Virus record (IMG/VR): IMGVR_UViG_3300024308_000302
Span: 62,001-126,000 of that record
Strand: one strand, 5' to 3'
Length of the DNA: 64,000 nt
In this document: positions 2,192-62,880 of the stretch, piece by piece
How the letters are laid out: every line of letters begins with the position of its first letter
Position numbering within the stretch: the first letter of the stretch is position 1
The notes under the pieces: generated by a model
What the model saw: the letters and a program-made list of their open reading frames with translations, nothing else
Told to the model about the DNA's origin: nothing
Databases searched by the model: none
Program-made: the position numbers and the translations under genes

Positions 2192-2593
2192 TTAATTGTT
2201 CAAGTCATCAAATGAGAACCGGAGTGGCATAATATCACCAAATTTAAACACTTTGAAGTCACCATCAATATTTGACAAGATAACTTCAGCGTCAGGTTCC
2301 AAAAATTCACTCATAACCTGAAGGCACGCACCACAAGGAACAATATGTTTTTCGGTATCAGCAGTAATAGCAATGCTGATGTAATCACCTTTTTTGCAGC
2401 CTTGCATATGGGCAGAATAAATAGCAGTACGTTCAGCACACATACAAAGTGAATATGAAGCGTTTTCGATGTTCGCACCCAAAAAAACACCTTTAGTGGT
2501 CAAAAGTGCGGCACCTACAGGGAATTTGGAAGCCAGCGAGTGAGTAAAGCTTTTAGCTTCAATCGATTTTTGAACAAGTTCCTTGTGATTCAT
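2192..2593 (-). CDS. cdd: cytidine deaminase (homotetrameric type)
   Basis: FPVGAAL, GANIENASY, Zn motifs CAE and PCGAC; start MNHKEL. Confidence 0.93.
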   Translation of the reverse strand: MNHKELVQKSIEAKSFTHSLASKFPVGAALLTTKGVFLGANIENASYSLCMCAERTAIYSAHMQGCKKGDYISIAITADTEKHIVPCGACLQVMSEFLEPDAEVILSNIDGDFKVFKFGDIMPLRFSFDDLNN

Positions 2594-2725
2594 TCGAAGT
2601 CTCTTTCTCATAAGTGGTTGATTATATGAGTGCAGTATAGCAAAGAAAGCATTATCAATCAAGCAAAATAAACATTTTCAAAATAAAAACCCGGCTTAAT
2701 GCCGGGTAAAGTATGCTTTGTAAGT

Positions 2726-3085
2726 TTAAACAGACATTTTTTTCAACTGTTCAACAAAAGCACTCGATTCAAAACGTTCAATGTCAGCAAAATTATTTTG
2801 CCCACCAGTAAAATCACGACGCCCTTTACAAGTTCTGAACAGAACTTTCAAGCCATCGCTGCCAAAGGATTGTCCAATTTGAATATAAAGTTTTTCACTA
2901 TGAAGAGTAACTTCACCAGAAACAGCAATACCAGCTTTATTGCTACGAATATCATAGGAACCAACAGGAAGATTAAGTTTCGTAGCAAGTTCTTTCAGGG
3001 CTTTTTTACCAGCACGATGAAAAGCGTCCTTGTCTTTTTCGTTATAAGAAAGATCTTTTTTGTTTAACTGTTGAAGAGTAGCCAT
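2726..3085 (-). CDS. hypothetical phage protein
   Basis: 119 aa ORF with RBS and own promoter/terminator. Confidence 0.8.
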   Translation of the reverse strand: MATLQQLNKKDLSYNEKDKDAFHRAGKKALKELATKLNLPVGSYDIRSNKAGIAVSGEVTLHSEKLYIQIGQSFGSDGLKVLFRTCKGRRDFTGGQNNFADIERFESSAFVEQLKKMSV

Positions 3086-3166
3086 TTTGTAAACCTCACT
3101 TGGTAAGAATTAAAGCTATTATACACATTTATTGATAAAGAGACAACAAATATTAACTGATTAAAA

Positions 3167-3412
3167 TTATTGTGAAATATGTAGCTGAACGGTGTCAGTG
3201 ACCAGACCAAAAACATCAATATCATATTGTTCAACACGCGGATCATCCCAGTTGAGTTCTTTCAAGTGAGCAACGAATTTCACATAATCATCATGATCTT
3301 TGAAATGAAAAGCGGATGAACGTGGGCCACCCATATAGAAATGACCAGCACTGGACTTGCAAAGGTATTGGTGCGAACCTGCAGAATTTACGGTGCTTGC
3401 AAAAATGGTCAT
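3167..3412 (-). CDS. hypothetical protein
   Basis: 81 aa ORF, AAAGG RBS. Confidence 0.75.
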   Translation of the reverse strand: MTIFASTVNSAGSHQYLCKSSAGHFYMGGPRSSAFHFKDHDDYVKFVAHLKELNWDDPRVEQYDIDVFGLVTDTVQLHISQ

Positions 3413-3510
3413 GACGAATCCTTTTTTTGAAAATGAGCTATGTATTGGATAAAGTCATTATACACATTTTAAGTTTTTAAGGCAAGAAAAAAGCGGCTCA
3501 TGCCGCTTTC

Positions 3511-3720
3511 TTATAGGAAAAGTGGTGAATGGGAAAGAGCAAGACCACACATCAATGAAAGCTTTTTCCGGGTTTGGTGTCTTTCATAACGTTGAGCATC
3601 AGTCATATTTCGCTCACGTTCTCTCATATCAGCTTCATACTGTGCTTGACGAACAGCTTTTGCAGCAACAGAAGCATTTTTACGTTCTTCAAAGGAACCA
3701 CGATTTTTAGCCTGCCCCAT
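3511..3720 (-). CDS. small basic hypothetical protein
   Basis: Start MGQAKNRG after GGAGG RBS. Confidence 0.75.
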   Translation of the reverse strand: MGQAKNRGSFEERKNASVAAKAVRQAQYEADMRERERNMTDAQRYERHQTRKKLSLMCGLALSHSPLFL

Positions 3721-4182: not shown

Positions 4183-5316
4183 TTAACCAGCGTCTTCGGT
4201 AGTCACACCAAGTGCTCCAAGGTCTACTTCGTCTAAAGACCAGTCAGACAAGTGATTACGAGAATAGAAAGTCAAGTAATCGTTTTTGAAGCCTCGAACC
4301 GCATTCATCACAAAAGAGAACTGTGGATGACCTTTCAGAGCAATTGCAACATCTTTGATAGGTTGGCCAACAAATTGCTTAGCAATTTCGTGGACTTCTT
4401 TATCAAGGTTTTCAATATGAGCCTTGATGCTATCATTGATATGATGAATGGTAGTCAAATCTGCTTCTGGTGCGTTCAATGCTAAGTAAGCAATATAATC
4501 ATCAAGTTTCTCTTCGACAACCAGTCGGGCAATGTCACGCTGACGAACAAAGGTAACAGCATGGTGCAATTCCATATACCATTTGGTTTTGATTTTAACC
4601 ATTTCACCATTCGCAAATTGAATTACATAACCTTCAATACCTTGAACAGTATTCAGCGACTTGATAAGGCTTGGCAAATCATAACCAACACCAAACAGCG
4701 GCTTGTTAACTGGAATATCAAACTTTGCAGCCAAAATTTCTTTTTCAACTGGCATGAGATATTCACCAGTGATATTGTCACGAACATGAAGCAAAGTCAT
4801 GTTTTCTTCGTCATATCGCAGAACAATACGATGGCTTGGCGAAGTGAACTCGAAAATAGGCGAAAGATTTGCCATCGAGCAATATTTAGTGAAATCGTAG
4901 TATTTCTGGTTTTTAGCAACAAACCCTTCTGATGCAACAGCAACATCAGATTTGAACGATTTTTTCGATTTCGCAAAGAACTGACCGTTCAGGAAACCAG
5001 CCGAAATCATCGAGCCGTCCATTTTGTCAAAACCCGCAACCATCGTATCCCAATTCAATACAGCGGGTTGAACTTCTGCACGCTCTGCAAGGTTGAAGAA
5101 TTTGTGCAGTGGGCGGGAAAGAATTTTGCCATCAGCATCAAAAGCGATACCACGGGCTTCTTTTTCCATCGGAGTGGTGAAGGACTCACCATTGCTGATA
5201 TTGTAGCAAATGACAGTAGCGTCATTCGATTGTTTGTTGATGCCAATGTATTCCTTATGTTGAACATGAGGAAGCATATCGTTGATGGTTTCGATACGTG
5301 GGAAGATACTGGGCAT
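4183..5316 (-). CDS. rnlA: T4 Rnl1-like RNA ligase
   Basis: Nucleotidyltransferase motifs KMDGS (I), EGYVI (IV), VKIK (V), plus KFFN and IFEF. Confidence 0.9.
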   Translation of the reverse strand: MPSIFPRIETINDMLPHVQHKEYIGINKQSNDATVICYNISNGESFTTPMEKEARGIAFDADGKILSRPLHKFFNLAERAEVQPAVLNWDTMVAGFDKMDGSMISAGFLNGQFFAKSKKSFKSDVAVASEGFVAKNQKYYDFTKYCSMANLSPIFEFTSPSHRIVLRYDEENMTLLHVRDNITGEYLMPVEKEILAAKFDIPVNKPLFGVGYDLPSLIKSLNTVQGIEGYVIQFANGEMVKIKTKWYMELHHAVTFVRQRDIARLVVEEKLDDYIAYLALNAPEADLTTIHHINDSIKAHIENLDKEVHEIAKQFVGQPIKDVAIALKGHPQFSFVMNAVRGFKNDYLTFYSRNHLSDWSLDEVDLGALGVTTEDAG

Positions 5317-9329: not shown

Positions 9330-9980
9330 TTAATCTTCCTTCATAATCGAAAGAACTTTGATGAACAAGTTGATAATGTCAAGGTAAAGATTTGCAGCAG
9401 AATCGACAGCATTATCTACAGTTTTTTCAAGCGACATTGCAACAGCCCAATCGCCACCAATGAAACCACAGAAGATAAGTGCCACAGCCCAATCAAGAAT
9501 GGTCAAATGTTGCTCAAAAACAAACATGAGAACCAACTGAACCACAATCGCAATCAACAATGCCCAAAACAAACCAGACAAAATGCTTTTGAAGAAATTA
9601 GGAGCCAATGTACCTGCAGCAATCATACCAACTGTAACAAGAGCGGTCGTTTGAATGGCATTTGAAACAACTTCTGGTGATACACCATCCAAAATCAAGG
9701 TCAATACAATGCCAAGTGGAACAGCAATGAAATTATAACCAATAAAGCTTACAAGAGGGTTTGAAGATGCATGAATCATAATCGATCCAATAATACAAGA
9801 TACAAAGTATCCAACCAAAAGCATCCAACCCAAAGCCTTGACAGTCTCTACTGGAACAGTTGCCACAATATACCAGTTGATAGCAAAGCCATACAACAGA
9901 ACAGCACCAATGATAAAGTTATACATATTTGCAGAAATAGTGTCACTACCAGCAGTATAACTTTTATTAAGTGTAGTCAT
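9330..9980 (-). CDS. Bax inhibitor-1/YccA family membrane protein
   Basis: About 7 TM helices; C-terminal signature AANLYLDIINLF. Confidence 0.88.
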   Translation of the reverse strand: MTTLNKSYTAGSDTISANMYNFIIGAVLLYGFAINWYIVATVPVETVKALGWMLLVGYFVSCIIGSIMIHASSNPLVSFIGYNFIAVPLGIVLTLILDGVSPEVVSNAIQTTALVTVGMIAAGTLAPNFFKSILSGLFWALLIAIVVQLVLMFVFEQHLTILDWAVALIFCGFIGGDWAVAMSLEKTVDNAVDSAANLYLDIINLFIKVLSIMKED

Positions 9981-12709: not shown

Positions 12710-13255
12710 TTACACGGTTACATCACCATTTTTATCTACTGCTCCAATTGCAGTAAGCATGGCAATGATTTCTTCTGCTTTTTGAGCCTCAGCCAACTTG
12801 CGTTCTTCTACAGTCTCTGGCAGTCGATTGATAATGATTTGTACATTATCACTCAAATTTTTCCAAGTGTAAGAATTATGGCGAGAACGGCGTTCTGGGG
12901 CTGTGAAAGTATAACGAATCCTAGAACCAGAAATAATAATTAGCGGGCCAGGATTCTGGTCTTCATCCAAGATATAGCTCAAAACACCATCTTGATGTTC
13001 TACAATAGAATCATCTTGAAATTCAGCCACACCAATGGAACGAAGTGTATCAGCCAGACGGCTTTCTTCGTCATAAATTTCAGATTCATTGAAAATACGA
13101 GTTACACCTTGATTGCCGAGGGTATAACTGATGCTGTAACGTTGAGGTACTTTAACTACATTATCATTGACAATCGCAAGGATATCATTTGCCCGCTGCA
13201 ACAATGCTCGTGCATTGGTTCTTACAACGTTGATTTTTTGTTCATTGGTAGTCAT
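12710..13255 (-). CDS. hypothetical protein
   Basis: Start MTTNEQ; promoter upstream. Confidence 0.8.
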   Translation of the reverse strand: MTTNEQKINVVRTNARALLQRANDILAIVNDNVVKVPQRYSISYTLGNQGVTRIFNESEIYDEESRLADTLRSIGVAEFQDDSIVEHQDGVLSYILDEDQNPGPLIIISGSRIRYTFTAPERRSRHNSYTWKNLSDNVQIIINRLPETVEERKLAEAQKAEEIIAMLTAIGAVDKNGDVTV

Positions 13256-25162: not shown

Positions 25163-25238
25163 AAAAAATCCTATAGAATTAGTTTAAAAACAATTTTAAA
25201 ACAAAAAAAGACCACTAAAGCGGCCTTCTGTTATAATT

Positions 25239-25361
25239 TGGTGGTTTTTAGGGGTTCGAACCCATCAATTAAGCCGTAGCCCAAAAGTTCTCTGTTAAAC
25301 ATACCCGAAAACAAATTCCAAGAACTATCTAGATCATTCAAAGTCTTTGCCAGAGAAAACC
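25239..25361 (-). ncRNA. 123 nt tRNA-like RNA
   Basis: GGTTTT/AAAACC acceptor-like stem, GGGTTCGAACCC T-arm, ACCA end, own promoter and terminator; no cloverleaf middle. Confidence 0.6.
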
Positions 25362-25408
25362 ATAAAACATATACTATCAAAAATCGATCTTAGATACAAG
25401 CATTTTTT

Positions 25409-42484: not shown

Positions 42485-43351
42485 ATGATTAAACTATTAC
42501 ATATTGCTATGATGGCAATAACTTTGACGCCAATTTCTTTTGCTGGATATACTATTAAAATACCTTTAGATAGTAGTCATATCAATATGGGAAATAATCA
42601 ACCAACTAACCCGACTAATCCAACTACACCATCAAAAAGTTATGATGACTTTTTAGAAGATCTATTTGCTAATAACACTGGATTCCAAGATAAATATAAT
42701 AACTTATGTAGTCAATATGAAGGCGGAGTAAGAACAGATTATGTGCCATCAGATGATGGAATAATTGATGTGAATGCTAACTGTGTTCAATTCCCCGGTT
42801 ATGATTTTTCTGGTAAAACATTCGCAGATGCAGCTATTGGTTGGGCCAGTTTCATTGGTGCAGATCTAAGTAATATACAGATGTCTGAGTTATATATGGA
42901 ATATACAGATTTTTCAGATGCTAACTTATCTAATGCTGTTGTAAATAATGGAGCCTTCAACTACGCAAGTTTTGATGGTACTAATATGTCATCAGCACAA
43001 TTTAATAATCCAAGTTTTATTGATTCATCTTTTGTTGATACCAATTTATCAAATGCTACTTTTGCAACAAACACAACTGTAAATTCATCTACTTTTGAAA
43101 ATGCAAATCTAAGTGGTGCAACATTTGAAGGTAACAACTCATTAAGAGGAACAACATTTACAAACTCTAATTTAAGTGGCGTAACATTTGGAGCAGGAAC
43201 AGGTTTTGATAACACTATTTTTGATGGAGTTGATTTAAGAGGTGCAGTATTCAGTGACTCACTTAATATCTATGGTGCTACATTTATAAATGTCATTTAT
43301 GATGAAACTACAGTTTGGCCAAGGTGGTATACACCACCAGCATCAATGTGA
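42485..43351 (+). CDS. exported pentapeptide-repeat protein (PL-motif family)
   Basis: Signal peptide, GYTIKIPLD, TNP linker, A(D/N)LS.A.F pentapeptide repeats. Confidence 0.88.
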   Translation: MIKLLHIAMMAITLTPISFAGYTIKIPLDSSHINMGNNQPTNPTNPTTPSKSYDDFLEDLFANNTGFQDKYNNLCSQYEGGVRTDYVPSDDGIIDVNANCVQFPGYDFSGKTFADAAIGWASFIGADLSNIQMSELYMEYTDFSDANLSNAVVNNGAFNYASFDGTNMSSAQFNNPSFIDSSFVDTNLSNATFATNTTVNSSTFENANLSGATFEGNNSLRGTTFTNSNLSGVTFGAGTGFDNTIFDGVDLRGAVFSDSLNIYGATFINVIYDETTVWPRWYTPPASM

Positions 43352-43360
43352 ACACAAAAA

Positions 43361-43382
43361 AAAGACCTCCGAAGAGGTCTTT
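43361..43382. terminator. bidirectional intrinsic terminator, identical to 62760-62781
   Basis: AAAGACCTC-CGAA-GAGGTCTTT with A/T tracts on both sides (UUCG loop on minus strand). Confidence 0.85.
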
Positions 43383-43394
43383 TGTGTTACTTAG

Positions 43395-43465
43395 CAAAGT
43401 GGCAGGATTTAAACCTACAACCTCCACTCGGTTAGAGTGGCTATCTGACATTGATATACACTTTA
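43395..43465 (-). ncRNA. tRNA-like element without CCA
   Basis: Full cloverleaf: TAAAGTG/CACTTTG, TATC/GATA, CCACT-CTAACCG-AGTGG, GTAGG-TTTAAAT-CCTGC; lacks D-loop GG and T-loop C. Confidence 0.6.
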
Positions 43466-43489
43466 CCTGTTCCGGCGTTTCAGCCTAAA

Positions 43490-43568
43490 CCCATATCAGT
43501 GATGGGACTTGAACCCATGACCTTCTCTCTTCAGAGATTATCTACCGACTGATATACACCTTTATGGG
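43490..43568 (-). ncRNA. tRNA-like element with extended acceptor stem and 4 nt anticodon loop
   Basis: TATC-AGTCGGTA-GATA, TCTCT-GAAG-AGAGA, ATGGG-TTCAAGT-CCCAT, GGTG/CACT plus CCCATA/TATGGG. Confidence 0.6.
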
Positions 43569-43691
43569 AGAGAACCAACTTGTTCAAGAACAAGCCTGAT
43601 GCAAGCTAAATCTTAGGTTACATCTATTTTTTAATAGTAGTCGCTGACTACTGTGAACGATTATAGCAAATAGCTTGATGGTAGGCAAGCT

Positions 43692-43919
43692 TTATTTTTT
43701 CATGTAGATTTCATTAATTTTTGCTTGGTCACAAGATACAACATTTTTTTCATAAAGTTCTGCATAAGAACAAGCTTCAAAAAAAAGATTATTCTCAGAA
43801 CTCAAATCAACATCTGGTTTTTGAAACAAAATAGAATCTACATCAACATACAGAGTGCCCCAAACATCGTCTTCAAACTCAACATTTCGAAGCTCAATGC
43901 CAATAAATGATGCACTCAT
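43692..43919 (-). CDS. small acidic protein
   Basis: 75 aa, GAGGA RBS. Confidence 0.7.
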   Translation of the reverse strand: MSASFIGIELRNVEFEDDVWGTLYVDVDSILFQKPDVDLSSENNLFFEACSYAELYEKNVVSCDQAKINEIYMKK

Positions 43920-50171: not shown

Positions 50172-51301
50172 TTGACATCCACCCCATAGCTAAAGCAAGG
50201 AGATTCCTTCCGCAAGACGGCCATGCCCGACCGCAAGAATGTTAATGGCTGCGTTTACATCTCGTTGATGTATGCCACCGCATACATCACATTTCCATTC
50301 TCTTATTCGCAGCCCATCTAATCCTTTCGGCCCAGTTAAAGACTTACAAAGATGACAGGTGCGGGTTGTGTCTCTTTCGTCAACATTATTATCTAGTAGT
50401 ATGCCTGCGTTATCGCATTTATTTTTCAGCATACTTCTAATCAGGCCAAAGCCTGCATCTAATGTTGACTTTCCTCTTTTTGCTTTGAGCATTTTCTTAA
50501 TGCTCAAATCTCCAACATAAATCTCACTAAAATTTTTGACTAAATTTGTAGTGAATTTATGTAGAGAGTCTTTTCTAATATTAGCAATTTTAGCATGAAT
50601 ATTACGAACTCTTTTTTTATTATTAGCTCTTTGTTGAACTTTTAATTGTTTTTCATATTGTCTATAAACTTGATTATATTTAGTTTCACTTCCATCACTA
50701 GCCGTAGCAGAAGCTTTGAACCCAAGATCAACACCAACAGCCCCTTGACCAGACGACAATACTCTTGGTACTTCAACAACAACATTGAAGTACCAACGAC
50801 CACGAGCATCTTCATTAAAAGAAGCATTTTTAAATTCGTATTTTGACAGTTCATAACTGTCAAATACTGAATAATATTGCTTATTGAAATAAACTTGACC
50901 ATTCACCCAAGAAGCTGCTTTTGAGTTTATTGGAATCCAACCAAGACTTCTTCTTGATCCAAATGTTTTTCGCCATTTGAGTTTTTGTTTTTTAAACTGT
51001 TTTCTTCGAGTAGCATATTCTTTACAAATGGATTGAATGGTTTGACTATGCAAACCAAGTTCTTTAGCAGAACCATTGGTATATTTTTGCAGATCATAAT
51101 TTGAAAGAAACTTTTTATGTTCAACTATGTTTCTATGACTTAATTCATTAAGATAATTCCAAACAAAATTAACGTTCTTAGCCATCTGGCAAAGAACGTT
51201 TTTATGTTTATCTTTAACTCTAACTTTTAGAGTTTTTGTTGTATATTCGGAATTATTCATAGGTGAAATTATAGATTAAAATAAGAAAAAAGTCAATAGT
51301 T
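50172..51301 (-). mobile_element. IS200/IS605-family tnpB-only element
   Basis: Right end GGAATCTCC...GGGGTGGATGTCAA overlapping the tnpB stop; no tnpA; left end uncertain. Confidence 0.75.
50190..51260 (-). CDS. tnpB: RNA-guided endonuclease TnpB (rearranged RuvC type)
   Basis: VDLG, IYVGDL, VDERDTT, CHLC...CDVC Zn finger, RDVNAA. Confidence 0.93.
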   Translation of the reverse strand: MNNSEYTTKTLKVRVKDKHKNVLCQMAKNVNFVWNYLNELSHRNIVEHKKFLSNYDLQKYTNGSAKELGLHSQTIQSICKEYATRRKQFKKQKLKWRKTFGSRRSLGWIPINSKAASWVNGQVYFNKQYYSVFDSYELSKYEFKNASFNEDARGRWYFNVVVEVPRVLSSGQGAVGVDLGFKASATASDGSETKYNQVYRQYEKQLKVQQRANNKKRVRNIHAKIANIRKDSLHKFTTNLVKNFSEIYVGDLSIKKMLKAKRGKSTLDAGFGLIRSMLKNKCDNAGILLDNNVDERDTTRTCHLCKSLTGPKGLDGLRIREWKCDVCGGIHQRDVNAAINILAVGHGRLAEGISLL

Positions 51302-52088: not shown

Positions 52089-52221
52089 AATAAACTCCAA
52101 ATAAATTAGCCTTCAAATTGAATGGATTATAACATAAAAAAGAAAAATTGACAACAAAAAAGCCTACTAGATCACTCTAATAGGCTTCTTTGTAAAGGCT
52201 TTCCACCTTATACGGAAGGTT

Positions 52222-52352
52222 TGGTGCGTATATGCCCACACAGGTCACGAACTGTTGCCAGTCTGGTAGCCACTTCACTATTGAACCAATGTCTTAACCA
52301 TAAAGGGATACGGGCACTGATTCTCAATATGTCACAGTTAGAACTATACTGC
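52222..52352 (-). ncRNA. ~131 nt CCA-ended structured RNA
   Basis: GC(A)GTAT/ATACGC+ACCA; D-arm-like GTTCT/AGAAT; long arm GTGCCC/GGGCAT. Confidence 0.55.
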
Positions 52353-52415
52353 AGCACCTTTGTTTCAAGTTCATATAGGCCATCGAGACAGCCATTCACA
52401 AAGGTTAATACAAAT

Positions 52416-52510
52416 TGGCAGGCTGGTCTGGCCTCGAACCAGAAACTTCCACTCACTCGTGGTGTTTTACCAGAGATCCTATGGCGGATCTATTTTAAAC
52501 TACTCAACCT
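52416..52510 (-). ncRNA. 95 nt aberrant tRNA (Trp-like ends)
   Basis: AGG...CCTGCCA; T-arm TCTGG-TTCGAGG-CCAGA; hairpin inserted in D-loop; 6 nt anticodon loop. Confidence 0.6.
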
Positions 52511-52545
52511 ATTAAATCATAAGACCTACACTATCAAGCAAAAAC

Positions 52546-52651
52546 TGGTGGAAGCGGAAGGATTCGAACCTCCGTGCGGCAAGGTATAGGTTGGTAACAC
52601 CACCCCTCCGCTTAGTTACCTCAGAGTTAAGCCAGACTACTCTACACTTCC
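52546..52651 (-). ncRNA. 106 nt aberrant tRNA with expanded anticodon arm
   Basis: GGAAGTG/CGCTTCC+ACCA, GAGT/ACTC D-arm, GGAGG-TTCGAAT-CCTTC T-arm, ~50 nt between D and T arms. Confidence 0.7.
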
Positions 52652-52667
52652 ATAATTTGTACAGGGC

Positions 52668-52742
52668 TGGTGGTTAAGCTTGGTTTACCTGTGTGACCAA
52701 TTTGAATGGAAGTGTTCCAATTACACTTGCATTCACCACTAC
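52668..52742 (-). ncRNA. degenerate tRNA-sized structured RNA
   Basis: D-arm GTGT-AATTGGA-ACAC, GAATG/CATTC, ACCA end; no T-loop. Confidence 0.4.
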
Positions 52743-52791
52743 TGATCTGGCATAAGCCATTTCTATAAGCAAATATGCATATCTGCTAAAC

Positions 52792-52869
52792 TGGTTGCGG
52801 GAGCAGGATTTGAACCTGCGATCTCCAGCCAATGAAGCTGGTGAGTTAACCGGACTACTCCATCCCGCG
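52792..52869 (-). tRNA. tRNA-Met(CAT), fMet-like acceptor
   Basis: 78 nt cloverleaf with C1:A72 mismatch, anticodon loop TTCATTG, encoded CCA. Confidence 0.88.
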
Positions 52870-52880
52870 TCAAATTTGTT

Positions 52881-52950
52881 CGCAGCACTAAGCCACTTGA
52901 CCTTCGCCCCTAACCTACGCTTGGCCCGGATGAACCTGATGTTCATCTCC
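52881..52950 (-). ncRNA. three-hairpin RNA motif, copy 2
   Basis: GATGAAC/GTTCATC; GGCC-AAGCGT...GGGGCG-AA-GGTC; GTGGC/GCTGC. Confidence 0.5.
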
Positions 52951-53015
52951 CGTATAAAAAAGAGCCGGTTCACCCAACCGTTTTATTTAGACATGTTACT
53001 TATCATCTAAATCTC

Positions 53016-53107
53016 TTGAAAACCTTGTGCCACTGGCACTGACCAACGCCCCGTCCACGCTTGGTCTATTGTAGAGCCTTTATTTCTCTACCCCTTGTTC
53101 GTTTCAA
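53016..53107 (-). ncRNA. three-hairpin RNA motif, copy 1
   Basis: Starts at +1; TTGAAA/TTTCAA closing GTAGAG/CTCTAC, GACCAA/TTGGTC, GTGCC/GGCAC. Confidence 0.55.
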
Positions 53108-53114
53108 TGAGATA

Positions 53115-53143
53115 AGTATAGCAAAATCCAATCTTCATGTCAA
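53115..53143 (-). promoter_or_regulatory. sigma70 promoter of the RNA operon
   Basis: TTGACA-17-TATACT with TG-C extension. Confidence 0.8.
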
Positions 53144-55524: not shown

Positions 55525-56478
55525 TCAAATGATTTTGAATTTTTTTACACCACCAAGAGAAAAATGAGCTATTTTGAAGTCCACCAACCTATACAGCAAG
55601 TCCAAAGTATAAGCAGAATCGTTGCCAGCATTATGAAGATAGCTTGAAAAATGGTTGACTTTAAGAGCTTTCAAAGCATCTTTAAGCGAAATATAATGAT
55701 TTTTGGCTGATTTTGCTGCAATGGATTCACATTCATTATAAATAACAGAAGATGTATCAATACATTTAATATGTTCAATTTGAGTCATATCAAAATTACA
55801 ATGACGCAAAATTTTGAATTCAATAGGTAATGCGTGACCAATAATAAAATCAACATCTTTTAGATGCTCAATGAGGATTGGGGCAAAATCATCATGAGTT
55901 ACGAGCACAGATGTGCCAAATTTGAAAGTGTCCATTCGTTTTTTAGTTGTTGTATAGTGAAAATGATTAACAACGCCATCAAAAGAAATAGTGACGCCCA
56001 TTTCAAAGATTTCTATTTTTTTTGATGAATCACGATATTCAAAATCAAGGGAAAGAATCTTTTTTCCTTCCAAGCTAATAGGAAGGGGAGATTCAAATTT
56101 TTCTGCAAATGCAGCTTTCTTTTCTTTGCGAACAGCAATACGTTTTTGTTCAATATCATTGAAAATAAGTTTGAATTCTTCATGGGAAGAAACATCAAAA
56201 AATTCAAGTTTTTCTTTTGAAAATTTTGCATACTTTTTGAATGCTGTAACTTTAAGTTCCAAAGAAAATAAACTATTTACATAATCAATAATTGGAATCA
56301 AAGAATTTTTTCCAATATGAATTTTATCTTCAAATATACAGAAAGAAGAAACAAGACCTTTATCAAAAAGATCTTGTTCATTGAAAACAGATTTAAATTG
56401 TGAAGCCAAATCACGATTTTCAATAAAAATAGATTGATTTAAAAAAGTAGATTTGAGAACTGCAAAGTTATAAATCAT
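55525..56478 (-). CDS. DEDDh 3'-5' exonuclease domain protein
   Basis: LDFEY, IIGH, IDTS, HNAGNDSAYT. Confidence 0.85.
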   Translation of the reverse strand: MIYNFAVLKSTFLNQSIFIENRDLASQFKSVFNEQDLFDKGLVSSFCIFEDKIHIGKNSLIPIIDYVNSLFSLELKVTAFKKYAKFSKEKLEFFDVSSHEEFKLIFNDIEQKRIAVRKEKKAAFAEKFESPLPISLEGKKILSLDFEYRDSSKKIEIFEMGVTISFDGVVNHFHYTTTKKRMDTFKFGTSVLVTHDDFAPILIEHLKDVDFIIGHALPIEFKILRHCNFDMTQIEHIKCIDTSSVIYNECESIAAKSAKNHYISLKDALKALKVNHFSSYLHNAGNDSAYTLDLLYRLVDFKIAHFSLGGVKKFKII

Positions 56479-56596
56479 GGTTAATCCTATTTTCATTAAT
56501 CAAAGGAATTTAAATAATTAATGCATTATAGCATAGGCTGGAGAAAAAGACCAACAAAAAAGGGCCGACTGGCCCTCTCTGAAACTTTTTTGATGT

Positions 56597-56986
56597 TTAA
56601 ATAGTCATCATGGATCTTAAAATCAAATGATCTTTAATGGACACATCTTCGTTGATAGTATCTCTCATTCTGATAATGTTCTCAATCATAGACTTGATTA
56701 CCATTTTATTTAAAATCATATCTGGAGACAAGAGTAAATTTTCTATAGTTGTACCAGCATAGGAAAACAAAAAATATTTATTTTTTATAACTATATCTAT
56801 ATCAAGCGATCTTTCTTGAAAGTGATAACGAAGAGAAAATGGACTATAGCCTATATATAAATTTTCTAACTCTAAACATGAAATTCCATTTGGATTTGAA
56901 TTATTTATAAATTTATCATATAAATCATCAAAGCCGATAAGTTCGACTGCAAATTTAAAAGATAATGATTCGATATCGTGTTCCAT
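56597..56986 (-). CDS. hypothetical protein
   Basis: 129 aa, GAGG RBS. Confidence 0.75.
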   Translation of the reverse strand: MEHDIESLSFKFAVELIGFDDLYDKFINNSNPNGISCLELENLYIGYSPFSLRYHFQERSLDIDIVIKNKYFLFSYAGTTIENLLLSPDMILNKMVIKSMIENIIRMRDTINEDVSIKDHLILRSMMTI

Positions 56987-56993
56987 AAAAACC

Positions 56994-58061
56994 TCAGAAT
57001 GAATAAATATTCATTTTAGGAAGTTCCCAAAGATAAGGTGCAATTTTAATACGTTTCTTTTGAATATTATAAGGATGCTCAATAAATTCAACCATTTGAA
57101 GAACAGCCATCAAAGTATAAGCCGCATCATTACCAGCATTATGCAAAATCAAAGAGTTATGTTCAATTTTCAAAATATGAAGCATATTTGACAAAGAAAC
57201 AGATTTATTTTTCATGTTTTCAAAGTAAAAATTGAAACGAGATTTCATTAGACCTTGAGAATCAATTACTTTCAGGTTATCAATAGACAGAATATCAATA
57301 CCATGATGTTTGAGAACAATATGTTCACTTGAAACAGAATGGCCAATAAGGTAATCAACATTAAGCAAGCGATCTTTAACAATAATCAACAATTCTTGAA
57401 CTGTAACAAATTGACTGTTACCAAACAGAAACTTATTACTTACATCTTTAGGATAGTGGTTCTCACCAATAGTGTCATTAACAATATAATGCTCATAGCT
57501 AATGACACCATCCTTAAAAATAGCCATACCACATTCCAAAATCGTCCAGTCTTTATTGGAATCAAACTCAAAATCAATAGCCATGATACGATTTGACTTG
57601 AAATTGGCAGATAACTGACTATTGAGTTTTTCTGTAATTTGAATTTTTTCTATACTTTCGGCTTTCTTTTCTTCTTTAATAGCAGCCCGAACAGCATCTT
57701 TACTTTCTTTATGCTCACCATTCATATTGAAACGAATTTGCTCAACAGCATCTTCAAATGTCAAGTAATCAGAAACTGTAAATGCAATTTCAGCTTTAGT
57801 TGATTGCGGGTCTTGAATATCAAATCCAAATTGATTTTTAATAGCATTCATGATTTTTGCAAGTTGCATTTCATCAAAAAGAATTGTTGAGCTTTTAGAA
57901 ACATAAAGTTCATCAACAAAATCTTTTTTTGCAACTTTAGAAAGCTTATAATTTTCCATGAAATCTGCAAAGACAATTTTTCTTTCTTTTTTAGTCTTAA
58001 ATTGATCAATCAAGCTTTCTTTGAAAGCTACTTGAACAGAGTTCCAGAAATAAAGGTTCAT
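56994..58061 (-). CDS. DEDDh 3'-5' exonuclease domain protein (paralogue of 55525..56478)
   Basis: IDFEF, LIGH, IDSQ, HNAGNDAAYT. Confidence 0.85.
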   Translation of the reverse strand: MNLYFWNSVQVAFKESLIDQFKTKKERKIVFADFMENYKLSKVAKKDFVDELYVSKSSTILFDEMQLAKIMNAIKNQFGFDIQDPQSTKAEIAFTVSDYLTFEDAVEQIRFNMNGEHKESKDAVRAAIKEEKKAESIEKIQITEKLNSQLSANFKSNRIMAIDFEFDSNKDWTILECGMAIFKDGVISYEHYIVNDTIGENHYPKDVSNKFLFGNSQFVTVQELLIIVKDRLLNVDYLIGHSVSSEHIVLKHHGIDILSIDNLKVIDSQGLMKSRFNFYFENMKNKSVSLSNMLHILKIEHNSLILHNAGNDAAYTLMAVLQMVEFIEHPYNIQKKRIKIAPYLWELPKMNIYSF

Positions 58062-62690: not shown

Positions 62691-62786
62691 AGTTAACCTT
62701 TTGGTGAAAATTAATACTTGATTATACAACAAAACAAAATATTTGTCACCAGAAATAAAAAAGACCTCCGAAGAGGTCTTTTAAAT

Positions 62787-62845
62787 GTGTAGTAGGATTC
62801 GAACCTAACAAATGGTTAACAAACCAAGCTCCCAACTGAGTACAC
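62787..62845 (-). ncRNA. miniature tRNA-like RNA (Asn-derived?)
   Basis: GTGTA/TACAC, CTC-AGTTGG-GAG, TGGT-TTGTTA-ACCA, TAGG-TTCGAAT-CCTA; own TTGCAA-17-TATAAT promoter and terminator; no CCA. Confidence 0.55.
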
Positions 62846-62880
62846 TGGCAATTATATCTAATTAGAGGAATTATTGCAAG

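Follow-up and report, generated by a model that had tools for sequence, protein, structure and literature searches.

In this study, we found that an uncultivated jumbo phage carries a protein-free operon of roughly 960 bases that specifies one initiator-type tRNA, two tRNA look-alikes that are inferred to be unable to read codons, and five other folded RNAs. All of these units are strongly conserved in related phages, and the arrangement extends the old unsolved puzzle of RNA C and RNA D of phage T4. The window analysed was a stretch of 64 kb, and the whole operon lies on its minus strand. The observation behind the original prediction, a noncoding operon dominated by tRNA-like RNAs, was confirmed. 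The parts of the operon are as follows, in the order of transcription.

53143 to 53115, minus strand: near-consensus sigma-70-type promoter, TTGACA-17-TATACT with a TG extension.
53100 to 53020, minus strand: unit A, a three-hairpin RNA (HP1, HP2 and HP3), in which HP2 is a stem topped by the conserved AGCG-N-GG..GGGGCG element (motif copy 1, 53064-53040).
52985 to 52955, minus strand: HP0, a terminator-like hairpin plus T6 run (52980-52955), the 5' element of module M2 and possibly an attenuator.
52954 to 52872, minus strand: unit M2, a paralogue of A, with GGGAG, an invariant 7-bp hairpin, the motif hairpin (copy 2, 52924-52898) and a 3' hairpin, directly 5' of tRNA-Met.
52869 to 52792, minus strand: tRNA-Met(CAU) with an initiator-type acceptor end, an altered anticodon stem and loop (UUCAUUG) and encoded CCA.
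52765 to 52660, minus strand: unit D, a hairpin followed by a three-way junction (closing helix GUGGU..ACCAC, a 6-bp hairpin with a 7-nt loop and a 5-bp hairpin with an 11-nt loop), directly 5' of unit B.
52651 to 52546, minus strand: unit B, a 106-nt tRNA-like RNA with a 7-bp acceptor stem, a D arm with GG, T arm GGAGG-UUCGAAU-CCUUC and A73-CCA, in which the anticodon arm is replaced by a predicted long two-part arm (5-bp stem, 13/3-nt internal loop and distal 6-bp hairpin with a GUU loop).
52510 to 52416, minus strand: unit C, a 95-nt tRNA-like RNA with a 6-bp acceptor stem, a 4-bp D stem whose loop carries an inserted hairpin, a 4-bp stem with a 6-nt loop at the anticodon position, T arm UCUGG-UUCGAGG-CCAGA and G73-CCA.
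52405 to 52327, minus strand: unit E, a 7-bp closing stem with an inner hairpin and then a second hairpin, directly 5' of unit F.
52326 to 52222, minus strand: unit F, a predicted multi-hairpin RNA with closing helix GUGCCC/GGGCAU, a 5-bp hairpin with a GNRA loop and a small AUUG/CAAU hairpin, the 3' tail ending in ACGCACCA.
52221 to 52194, minus strand: small invariant hairpin.
52193 to 52154, minus strand: intrinsic terminator, an 18-pair hairpin plus T run.

The promoter matches the consensus at 11 of 12 positions. Its -35 and extended -10 boxes are conserved in the relatives L050, L051, L053 and L047 (these and other L-numbers denote loci of related phages), while the spacer varies. In the small hairpin and the terminator, only loop changes were seen in the relatives. 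The ORFs of 82-122 aa inside the operon are not kept in L051, and no conserved ORF was found. The global minimum-energy fold of the 963-nt transcript was uninformative.

ARAGORN and Rfam call only one of the eight units a tRNA, namely tRNA-Met(CAU), with 56 bits. Running ARAGORN with introns and lowered thresholds gave mutually inconsistent calls for the odd units, and these were not used as evidence. The tRNA-Met has the C1xA72 mismatch and the A11:U24 pair that are hallmarks of bacterial initiator tRNA-fMet. On the other hand, it lacks the three consecutive G-C pairs at the bottom of the anticodon stem (29-31 with 39-41), as the stem is CCAGC/GCUGG (A29-U41, G30-C40, C31-G39) and the loop has U37 and G38. 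Homologues of this tRNA are present in L026, L047 and L053.

A scan for a 7-bp acceptor stem, a 5-bp T stem, a T loop and NCCA found two more units, B (7/7 acceptor pairs) and C (6/7). The whole window has 7 such 3' ends against a mean of 1.2 in shuffles. Neither B nor C gave a match to the tRNA family (RF00005, gathering score 29 bits), even at E<=10 in searches of 1.5 kb and of 256 nt, and default ARAGORN found neither. A covariance model of C finds L051 and L053 at 82-84 bits but aligns canonical tRNAs end to end only weakly, at 17-22 bits. The same phages carry canonical tRNAs of 60-75 bits, so the odd forms are not the normal tRNA shape of the lineage. Neither unit has the 5-bp anticodon stem with a 7-nt loop, U33 and a conserved anticodon. 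B has no such hairpin anywhere in its 50-nt arm, and the loop of C is GAGUGA in this phage and GCGGUA in L051. The similarity of B to tRNA-Pro (19/28 and 22/28 at the two ends) is not beyond what tRNAs of one genome share. The Shine-Dalgarno-like GGAGG in B is lost in L051.

Units A, M2, D, E and F are folded RNAs and not tRNAs. The motif CCAAGCGT-N4-6-GGGGCG-NN-GGTCA occurs twice, in A and in M2, with 0 expected by chance. The idea that the motif stem-loop is a D arm, or that the motif region is a known ribozyme or riboswitch, has no support in Rfam. None of the five units has a match at the gathering score in Rfam 15, where the searches returned only tRNA hits, and no DNA match other than that of tRNA-Met was found in 50,697 deposited phage records.

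The original prediction counted seven units, but there are eight, as unit E was missed or merged. It also described four units, besides the near-normal tRNA, as ending in N-CCA with re-engineered cores, but only B and C have a real acceptor/T-arm/NCCA end. In D, the first C of the 'CCA' is the closing pair of a helix with 3 double changes, and there is no T loop. In F, the G-to-A changes in L050 and L051 break the proposed acceptor pairs and support a different closing helix, and no T arm is present. The 'CCA' ends of D and F are therefore not acceptor ends.

Relatives L050 (98% identical) and L051 and L053 (81%) carry the same units. The neutral divergence to L051 is saturated, as only 13 of 38 four-fold sites of the neighbouring gene are identical and the ungapped gene is 61% identical. 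Nevertheless, the difference to L051 is 3/106 positions in B, 6/105 in F, 11/79 in E, about 12/103 in D, 17/81 in A and 25/95 in C. B is 103/106 identical to both L051 and L053; two of the changes fall in the internal loop and one turns G2-C71 into G-U. In F, which is 99/105 identical to L051, G-U changes to A-U in the closing helix and GCAA to GUAA in the tetraloop.

The original prediction could have been refuted by a lack of compensatory changes or by a match of each unit to a standard tRNA in relatives, and neither was found. Across the window, L050, L051, L053 and L047, HP2 of unit A has 3 pairs changed on both sides and HP1 has 2, and the fold z-score of A is -2.7. In D, all 22 pairs are kept in 4 sequences and 7 of them are changed on both sides, whereas slid controls give 0-1. 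In C (z-score -2.2), the inserted hairpin has 3 pairs changed on both sides and the anticodon-position stem has 1, while the loops vary. Across six copies of E, A-U changes to U-A in the second hairpin, and there are several single compensating changes. Five copies of M2 are paired in 100% of cells with 1 double and 4 single compensating changes, although its conservation is mostly at the sequence level. Only three distinct sequences were found for B, C and F, so the long arm of B and the fold of F rest mainly on thermodynamic prediction, and their fold z-scores (-1.2 and +0.4) are not significant. In L050, L051 and L053, B and C have the same non-canonical form and are not standard tRNAs.

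The modules recur in other cassettes in a reshuffled order, with M2, D and E directly upstream of a tRNA or tRNA-like unit in L047, L026 and L009. D sits 5' of tRNA-Pro in L047, E sits 5' of tRNA-Met or tRNA-Asn in relatives, and M2-tRNA moves as one block between relatives. The T run of HP0 is lost in the L009 and L047 copies, and a different hairpin sits at this place in L047 copy b. Five IMG/VR relatives, found through the upstream 384-aa gene (68-81% aa identity), lack the operon, and synteny ends at that gene. Near-identical copies from other samples carried no useful variation. A motif scan of metagenomes gave 27 loci, of which 23 are chance hits in GC-rich coding DNA, three come from this phage's own 1.54-Mb contig and one (L032) is a true relative. 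Scans of IMG/VR with the unit E and unit B patterns found only this genome, and two scans of 185,579 reference genomes found nothing.

Taken together, the data suggest a phage 'stable RNA' operon, built like a tRNA operon but made mostly of non-decoding RNAs. We give this reading as a whole a probability of about 0.45. The analysis itself establishes the single strong promoter and terminator around eight folded units without a conserved ORF, the initiator-type tRNA-Met, the upper half and elbow of a tRNA in B and C (acceptor stem, D-loop GG, canonical T loop and encoded NCCA) without a 7-nt anticodon loop, the independence of the modules A, M2, D, E and F, the purifying selection on all units in related phages, and the recurrence of M2, D and E upstream of tRNAs. 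The rest, including expression and function, is inferred. We presume, from anatomy only, that the precursor of roughly 960 nt would be cut by host RNase P at the 5' ends of tRNA-Met, B and C and trimmed in the AU-rich spacers, which would release the tRNA, the two mimics and the leader modules as separate stable small RNAs, as in the T4 tRNA / RNA C / RNA D cluster. The leader modules might, however, act only in cis. In this view, B and C cannot decode and most likely act as tRNA-shaped ligands that occupy or recruit proteins recognising the acceptor/T-arm/elbow of tRNA, which may be host defence enzymes or phage or host tRNA enzymes. B would have a second, sequence-specific partner for its nearly invariant long arm, and the tRNA-Met, with its changed anticodon stem and loop, would supply an initiator tRNA. 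No protein partner was identified, and apart from a T4 Rnl1-like ligase 47 kb away, the window has almost no annotatable RNA enzymes.

The interpretation in the original prediction was partly supported. A single promoter-to-terminator noncoding operon with odd units maintained by selection was borne out, but only two units are tRNA mimics, and the proposed role as decoys or inhibitors against tRNA-targeting immunity, or as aminoacyl carriers, has no direct evidence. The decoy idea remains possible but unlikely. Phage tRNAs act as counter-measures to tRNA-cleaving defences (PMC10264068, PMC11464382, PMC11555353), the phage carries the T4 Rnl1-like tRNA-repair ligase, and neighbouring cassettes hold tRNAs with altered anticodon loops, including non-U33. 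Moreover, B and C keep the intact acceptor/T/elbow surface and the CCA that acceptor-end-modifying toxins would recognise. On the other hand, the absence of an anticodon loop in B and the unconserved 6-nt loop of C argue against mimicry of the site that anticodon nucleases cut. The known cases work by supplying functional, resistant tRNAs, no decoy case turned up in our literature searches, and a generic decoy role does not explain the near-invariance of the long arm of B.

A broader possibility, which we regard as doubtful but not excluded, is that jumbo phages of this lineage deploy a modular toolkit of RNase P-released noncoding RNAs. It would combine non-decoding tRNA mimics (B, C and the 196-nt and roughly 115-nt CCA-ending RNAs in neighbouring cassettes) with recurring structured leader modules, and these RNAs would act directly on tRNA-recognising host or phage proteins, for example by blocking acceptor-end or elbow-binding defence enzymes. 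If true, they would be the first RNA-based, tRNA-shaped anti-defence or enzyme-hijacking factors in phages and would suggest a function for T4 RNA C and D.

Two further readings are less likely. The first is that the non-tRNA modules are only cis-acting leaders and spacers that set the order, efficiency or stability of precursor processing, and that B and C are unusual but real translational tRNAs. M2, D and E always sit directly 5' of a tRNA or tRNA-like unit, and in E. coli transcribed tRNA spacers are functional pieces of precursors. However, the missing anticodon loop of B and the 4-bp stem and variable 6-nt loop without U33 in C are incompatible with ordinary decoding, F follows E but is not a tRNA, and the sequence conservation of 86-94% in E and F is more than a spacer role would need. 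The second is that the units are trans-acting regulatory small RNAs or protein sponges unrelated to tRNA biology, with the tRNA-like ends serving only as a processing and stabilising handle. The 50-nt arm of B is 48/50 identical across saturated divergence, which suggests a sequence-specific partner, and tRNA-like handles give defined ends through RNase P. However, a search for antisense targets gave only chance-level complementarity within the 64-kb window.

It is very unlikely that B is a minimal tmRNA-like tRNA domain that binds SmpB or enters stalled ribosomes. The Rfam tmRNA model (RF00023) aligns the 3' two-thirds of B at 15.8 bits (E = 1e-4 in a 256-nt search), with a shared ACUAAGC element and T arm/acceptor, and a long helix replaces the anticodon arm as in tmRNA. 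However, the score is far below the gathering score of 47, ARAGORN finds no tmRNA, and B has A3-U70 instead of the G3-U70 needed for alanine charging, no tag reading frame ending in a stop, no pseudoknots and a normal 4-bp D stem. B as a tRNA(CUA) carrying a 25-nt insert that would be cut out and rejoined by the phage ligase is equally remote. Removal of 25 nt leaves a GAGGU/ACCUU stem with the loop AACUAAG, but position 33 is A, no splice motif or endonuclease is evident, and recoding TAG as sense does not lengthen the long ORFs of the window. Decay into tRNA pseudogenes and neutral spacers, although a truncated tRNA-Thr piece follows tRNA-Met in L053 and ordinary tRNAs occupy the slots after D and E in L047, is already contradicted by the 74-97% identity of the units beside saturated four-fold sites, the many compensatory double changes and the intact, conserved promoter and terminator.

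Phage tRNA clusters have held unexplained tRNA-like stable RNAs since T4 species 1 and 2 were sequenced in the 1970s. This locus offers seven new RNA motifs without an Rfam match, all with clear signs of selection, and two of them keep the tRNA-like upper half while the lower half is replaced. As phage tRNAs have recently been recognised as weapons against tRNA-cleaving immunity, these RNAs are concrete candidates for the use of tRNA shape, without decoding, to manipulate tRNA-binding proteins. If they are only processing elements, they still define new conserved RNA structures and a modular way of building phage RNA operons.

The closest known analogues are T4 RNA C (species 1) and RNA D (species 2), small stable noncoding RNAs encoded at the end of the T4 tRNA gene cluster, whose function is described as still unknown (PMC9697503). 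T4 rnaC has a canonical T arm (CCGGG-UUCGAAU-CCCGG) next to its 3' end, with long inserts in place of a normal cloverleaf. With respect to stable small RNAs processed out of a tRNA-cluster transcript, only the genomic arrangement of the present operon is analogous. However, only the 11-nt T-loop string is shared in sequence, T4 rnaC and rnaD do not encode CCA, and the present operon has eight units, two with full acceptor/D/T/NCCA anatomy, plus five recurring leader modules that T4 is not known to have. Compared with canonical tRNA, B and C share the acceptor stem, D stem with GG in the loop, T stem and T loop, discriminator and CCA, but B has the 50-nt arm and C an extra hairpin in the D loop. 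The tmRNA tRNA-like domain shares with B the acceptor/T-arm module with CCA and the long helix at the place of the anticodon arm, but B is 106 nt long and lacks the tmRNA features described above. The phage-encoded functional tRNAs that bypass tRNA-cleaving defences, such as T5 tRNA-Lys against PARIS and tRNA-Tyr against retron effectors (PMC10264068, PMC11464382, PMC11555353), are phage tRNA-cluster genes with altered anticodon loops, a pattern that the present tRNA-Met and the non-U33 tRNAs of neighbouring cassettes fit. Those are decoding tRNAs, which B and C are inferred not to be, and the five other modules have no counterpart there. GOLLD and ROOL are large structured noncoding RNAs of unknown function that are often next to tRNAs in phages. 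No Rfam hit to either was found here, and the present units are 80-125 nt each and shuffle independently between cassettes, so they are not one large RNA.

The feature lies on the minus strand, where a near-consensus sigma-70 promoter and an 18-pair hairpin followed by a T run bracket about 960 nt. Within this region, ARAGORN and Rfam call a single tRNA, a tRNA-Met(CAU) scoring 56 bits. A scan written for a 7-bp acceptor stem, a 5-bp T stem, a T loop and an encoded NCCA found two more units, B and C, and the whole window has 7 such 3' ends against a mean of 1.2 in shuffled sequence. The remaining sequence resolved into five further folded units, which we named A, M2, D, E and F. The observation itself was confirmed, although with corrections, as the operon holds eight units and not the seven of the original prediction. 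The repeated motif that had been noted is real, since two exact matches to a 19-base pattern were found with none expected by chance. In order of transcription, the elements are as follows:
53143-53115, minus strand, promoter, TTGACA, 17 nt, TG-n-TATACT
53100-53020, minus strand, folded unit A
52985-52872, minus strand, folded unit M2
52869-52792, minus strand, tRNA-Met(CAU)
52765-52660, minus strand, folded unit D
52651-52546, minus strand, tRNA-like unit B, 106 nt, 7/7 acceptor pairs
52510-52416, minus strand, tRNA-like unit C, 95 nt, 6/7 acceptor pairs
52405-52327, minus strand, folded unit E
52326-52222, minus strand, folded unit F
52193-52154, minus strand, terminator hairpin with T run

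The window is part of the 290-kb IMG/VR contig UViG_3300024308_000302, and it is AT-rich (about 33% GC) and packed with small ORFs on one strand, few of which have any family match. The identical sequence also lies inside a 1.54-Mb JGI contig and an 811-kb ENA contig; it could be a provirus, a misassembly or a much larger element. No deposited phage genome matched the operon apart from the tRNA-Met. The window encodes a T4 Rnl1-like RNA ligase at 4183-5316 on the minus strand (Pfam RNA_lig_T4_1, E = 3.5e-27), whose closest isolate match is the 344-kb Ralstonia jumbo phage RsoM2USA at 40% identity; this is a tRNA-repair-type enzyme in the same genome as the tRNA-like RNAs. The few other annotatable genes are a pentapeptide-repeat protein on the opposite strand (42485-43351, plus), a Bax-inhibitor-1-like membrane protein (9330-9980, minus), a cytidine/dCMP deaminase-like protein (2192-2662, minus) and two paralogous DEDDh exonuclease-domain genes just upstream of the operon region (55525-58061, minus).

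Five IMG/VR relatives found through the upstream 384-aa gene lack the operon, but homologues were found by three other routes. A metagenome scan with the motif gave L032/L047, a 132-kb contig. The downstream 165-aa protein gave two relatives, L050, in which the operon is 97.8% identical, and L051, in which it is about 81% identical, while a further downstream protein gave L053, which is 98.5% identical to L051 but has more upstream sequence. A second operon, which carries another copy of M2, lies just past the window's end in the same genome (L009/L026). A TnpB / IS605 OrfB-like gene (356 aa; 50190-51260, minus) lies about 0.9 kb downstream of the operon, after the intervening 165-aa gene. In the 98%-identical L050, the same-sized gene sits at a different place (2457-3527) and on the other strand, inside the homologue of the 384-aa upstream gene. 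The element therefore looks recently mobile in these phage genomes.

The units are maintained and are not decaying. Between the window and L051, the adjacent protein gene is 61% identical in an ungapped comparison and only 13 of 38 four-fold degenerate sites are identical, indicating that neutral divergence is saturated. The differences in the units are listed here.

Positions differing between the window and L051, by unit
B, 3 of 106
F, 6 of 105
E, 11 of 79
D, about 12 of 103
A, 17 of 81
C, 25 of 95

Where the sequence does change, the helices are kept. In unit D, all cells of 22 pairs are paired in four sequences and 7 pairs are changed on both sides, while slid-partner controls gave 0-1. 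Unit A shows 3 double changes in the motif stem (GACCAA/UUGGUC against AAUCCA/UGGAUU) and 2 in the first hairpin, and unit E shows an A-U to U-A exchange across six copies. In unit C, the hairpin inserted in the D loop changes from AGAUCC/GGAUCU to GAGC/GCUC, and the stem at the anticodon position changes from CCAC/GUGG to CCUC/GAGG, while both loops vary; a covariance model built from the window copy recovered L051 and L053 at 82-84 bits. M2 is conserved mostly at the sequence level, with 1 double and 4 single compensating changes and 100% pairing. The ORFs inside the operon are not conserved, and the promoter boxes are conserved while the spacer varies.

B and C each keep an acceptor stem, a D arm with GG in the loop, a canonical T arm, the discriminator and an encoded CCA. 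In B, a 50-nt domain stands where the anticodon arm should be. Our best model for it consists of a 5-bp proximal stem (GAGGU/ACCUU), an internal loop of 13 nt on one side and 3 nt on the other, a distal 6-bp hairpin with a GUU loop, and a 7-nt variable loop. The only two internal substitutions in L051 and L053 fall in the internal loop, and the third substitution turns G2-C71 into G-U. In C, the D loop holds the extra hairpin, and the anticodon position has a 4-bp stem with a 6-nt loop. Neither unit has a 7-nt anticodon loop or a U33, and neither received any Rfam tRNA hit, although the same phages carry ordinary tRNAs scoring 60-75 bits. B and C are therefore tRNA-shaped in the upper half but cannot decode. 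B gave a weak alignment to the tmRNA model (15.8 bits against a cut-off of 47), and it lacks G3-U70, a tag frame and pseudoknots.

On the other hand, D and F, which had been read as two further units ending in N-CCA, did not hold up as tRNA-like. In D, the first C of the 'CCA' is the closing pair of a helix with three double changes. In F, the substitutions seen in L050 and L051 break the proposed acceptor pairs; they fit a GUGCCC/GGGCAU closing helix instead (G-U to A-U), and the change from GCAA to GUAA preserves a GNRA loop.

The same modules occur in other cassettes in different orders.

Order of elements in the operon and in related cassettes
Window: promoter, A, M2, tRNA-Met, D, B, C, E, F, terminator
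L053: promoter, A, M2, tRNA-Met; then a 198-aa gene; then promoter, A, D, B, an extra unit, C, E, F
L047, first run: M2, tRNA-Lys, E, tRNA-Met
L047, second run: promoter, A, D, tRNA-Pro
L047 and L026, elsewhere: E, tRNA-Asn
L009: M2, tRNA-Thr

In L053 (3227-4670), the operon is split by the inserted 198-aa gene, the promoter plus unit A are duplicated on both sides of it, and a truncated tRNA-Thr fragment follows the tRNA-Met. M2, D and E always sit directly 5' of a tRNA or tRNA-like unit, so RNase P cleavage would release each one with a defined 3' end. Another member of the CCA-ending tRNA-like set is a roughly 196-nt RNA with a 7/7 acceptor stem, a T arm with a UUCGAAU loop and an ACCA end, conserved between two phages (L009 3127-2932, minus, about 4 kb past the window end; L047 about 12800-12990). 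It is too short for tmRNA or a group I intron and is not called by ARAGORN or Rfam. The window also holds three more small RNA cassettes, each with its own promoter and terminator, for which no homologues were seen in L047 or L053 by BLAST:
25200-25400, minus strand, a roughly 115-nt RNA with a GGUUUU/AAAACC terminal stem and ACCA end
43360-43700, minus strand, two low-scoring tRNAs, Val(AAC) and a 38-bit tRNA
62760-62880, minus strand, a 63-nt mini tRNA-like unit without CCA

The tRNA-Met has the initiator hallmarks C1xA72 and A11:U24, but it lacks the three G-C pairs of the anticodon stem, and its loop reads UUCAUUG. Neighbouring cassettes hold tRNAs without U33, and several otherwise tRNA-like genes of this lineage lack this near-universal base (L047 9212-9287 and 1819-1893; L009 2782-2706; L026 893-968). 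Lys(UUU) and Thr(UGU) have G33, Ser/Phe-like genes have A33, and the orthologous gene reads UUU in one phage and UGU in the other. This agrees with the published idea that phage tRNAs carry anticodon-loop changes to escape tRNA-cleaving defences (PMC10264068, PMC11464382, PMC11555353).

Taken together, our analysis established the operon structure, the non-decoding tRNA-like anatomy of B and C, the modular structured RNAs and the purifying selection, whereas the mechanism is inferred from these data. Most likely, RNase P and spacer processing would cut the precursor into separate stable RNAs, B and C would act as tRNA-shaped ligands for proteins that read the acceptor/T-arm/elbow, and the nearly invariant long arm of B would have its own sequence-specific partner. 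We found no antisense target in the window and no candidate protein partner nearby. The interpretation first proposed for the locus was supported in part. Enzymes that act on the acceptor end remain possible targets, but the version in which the RNAs are decoys for anticodon nucleases is not favoured, because nothing in B or C imitates an anticodon loop.

Literature searches found no description of non-decoding tRNA mimics or of these modules in phages, and a large survey of viral structured RNAs reports 'tRNA or tRNA-like' candidates only in general terms (PMC10690425). The closest known case is the T4 tRNA cluster with RNA C and RNA D. T4 rnaC has a canonical T arm next to its 3' end and long inserts, and its function is described as still unknown (PMC9697503), but nothing beyond the T loop is shared in sequence with the units of this operon. 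We regard these units as new RNA families within the known but unexplained class of tRNA-cluster-associated stable RNAs of large phages.
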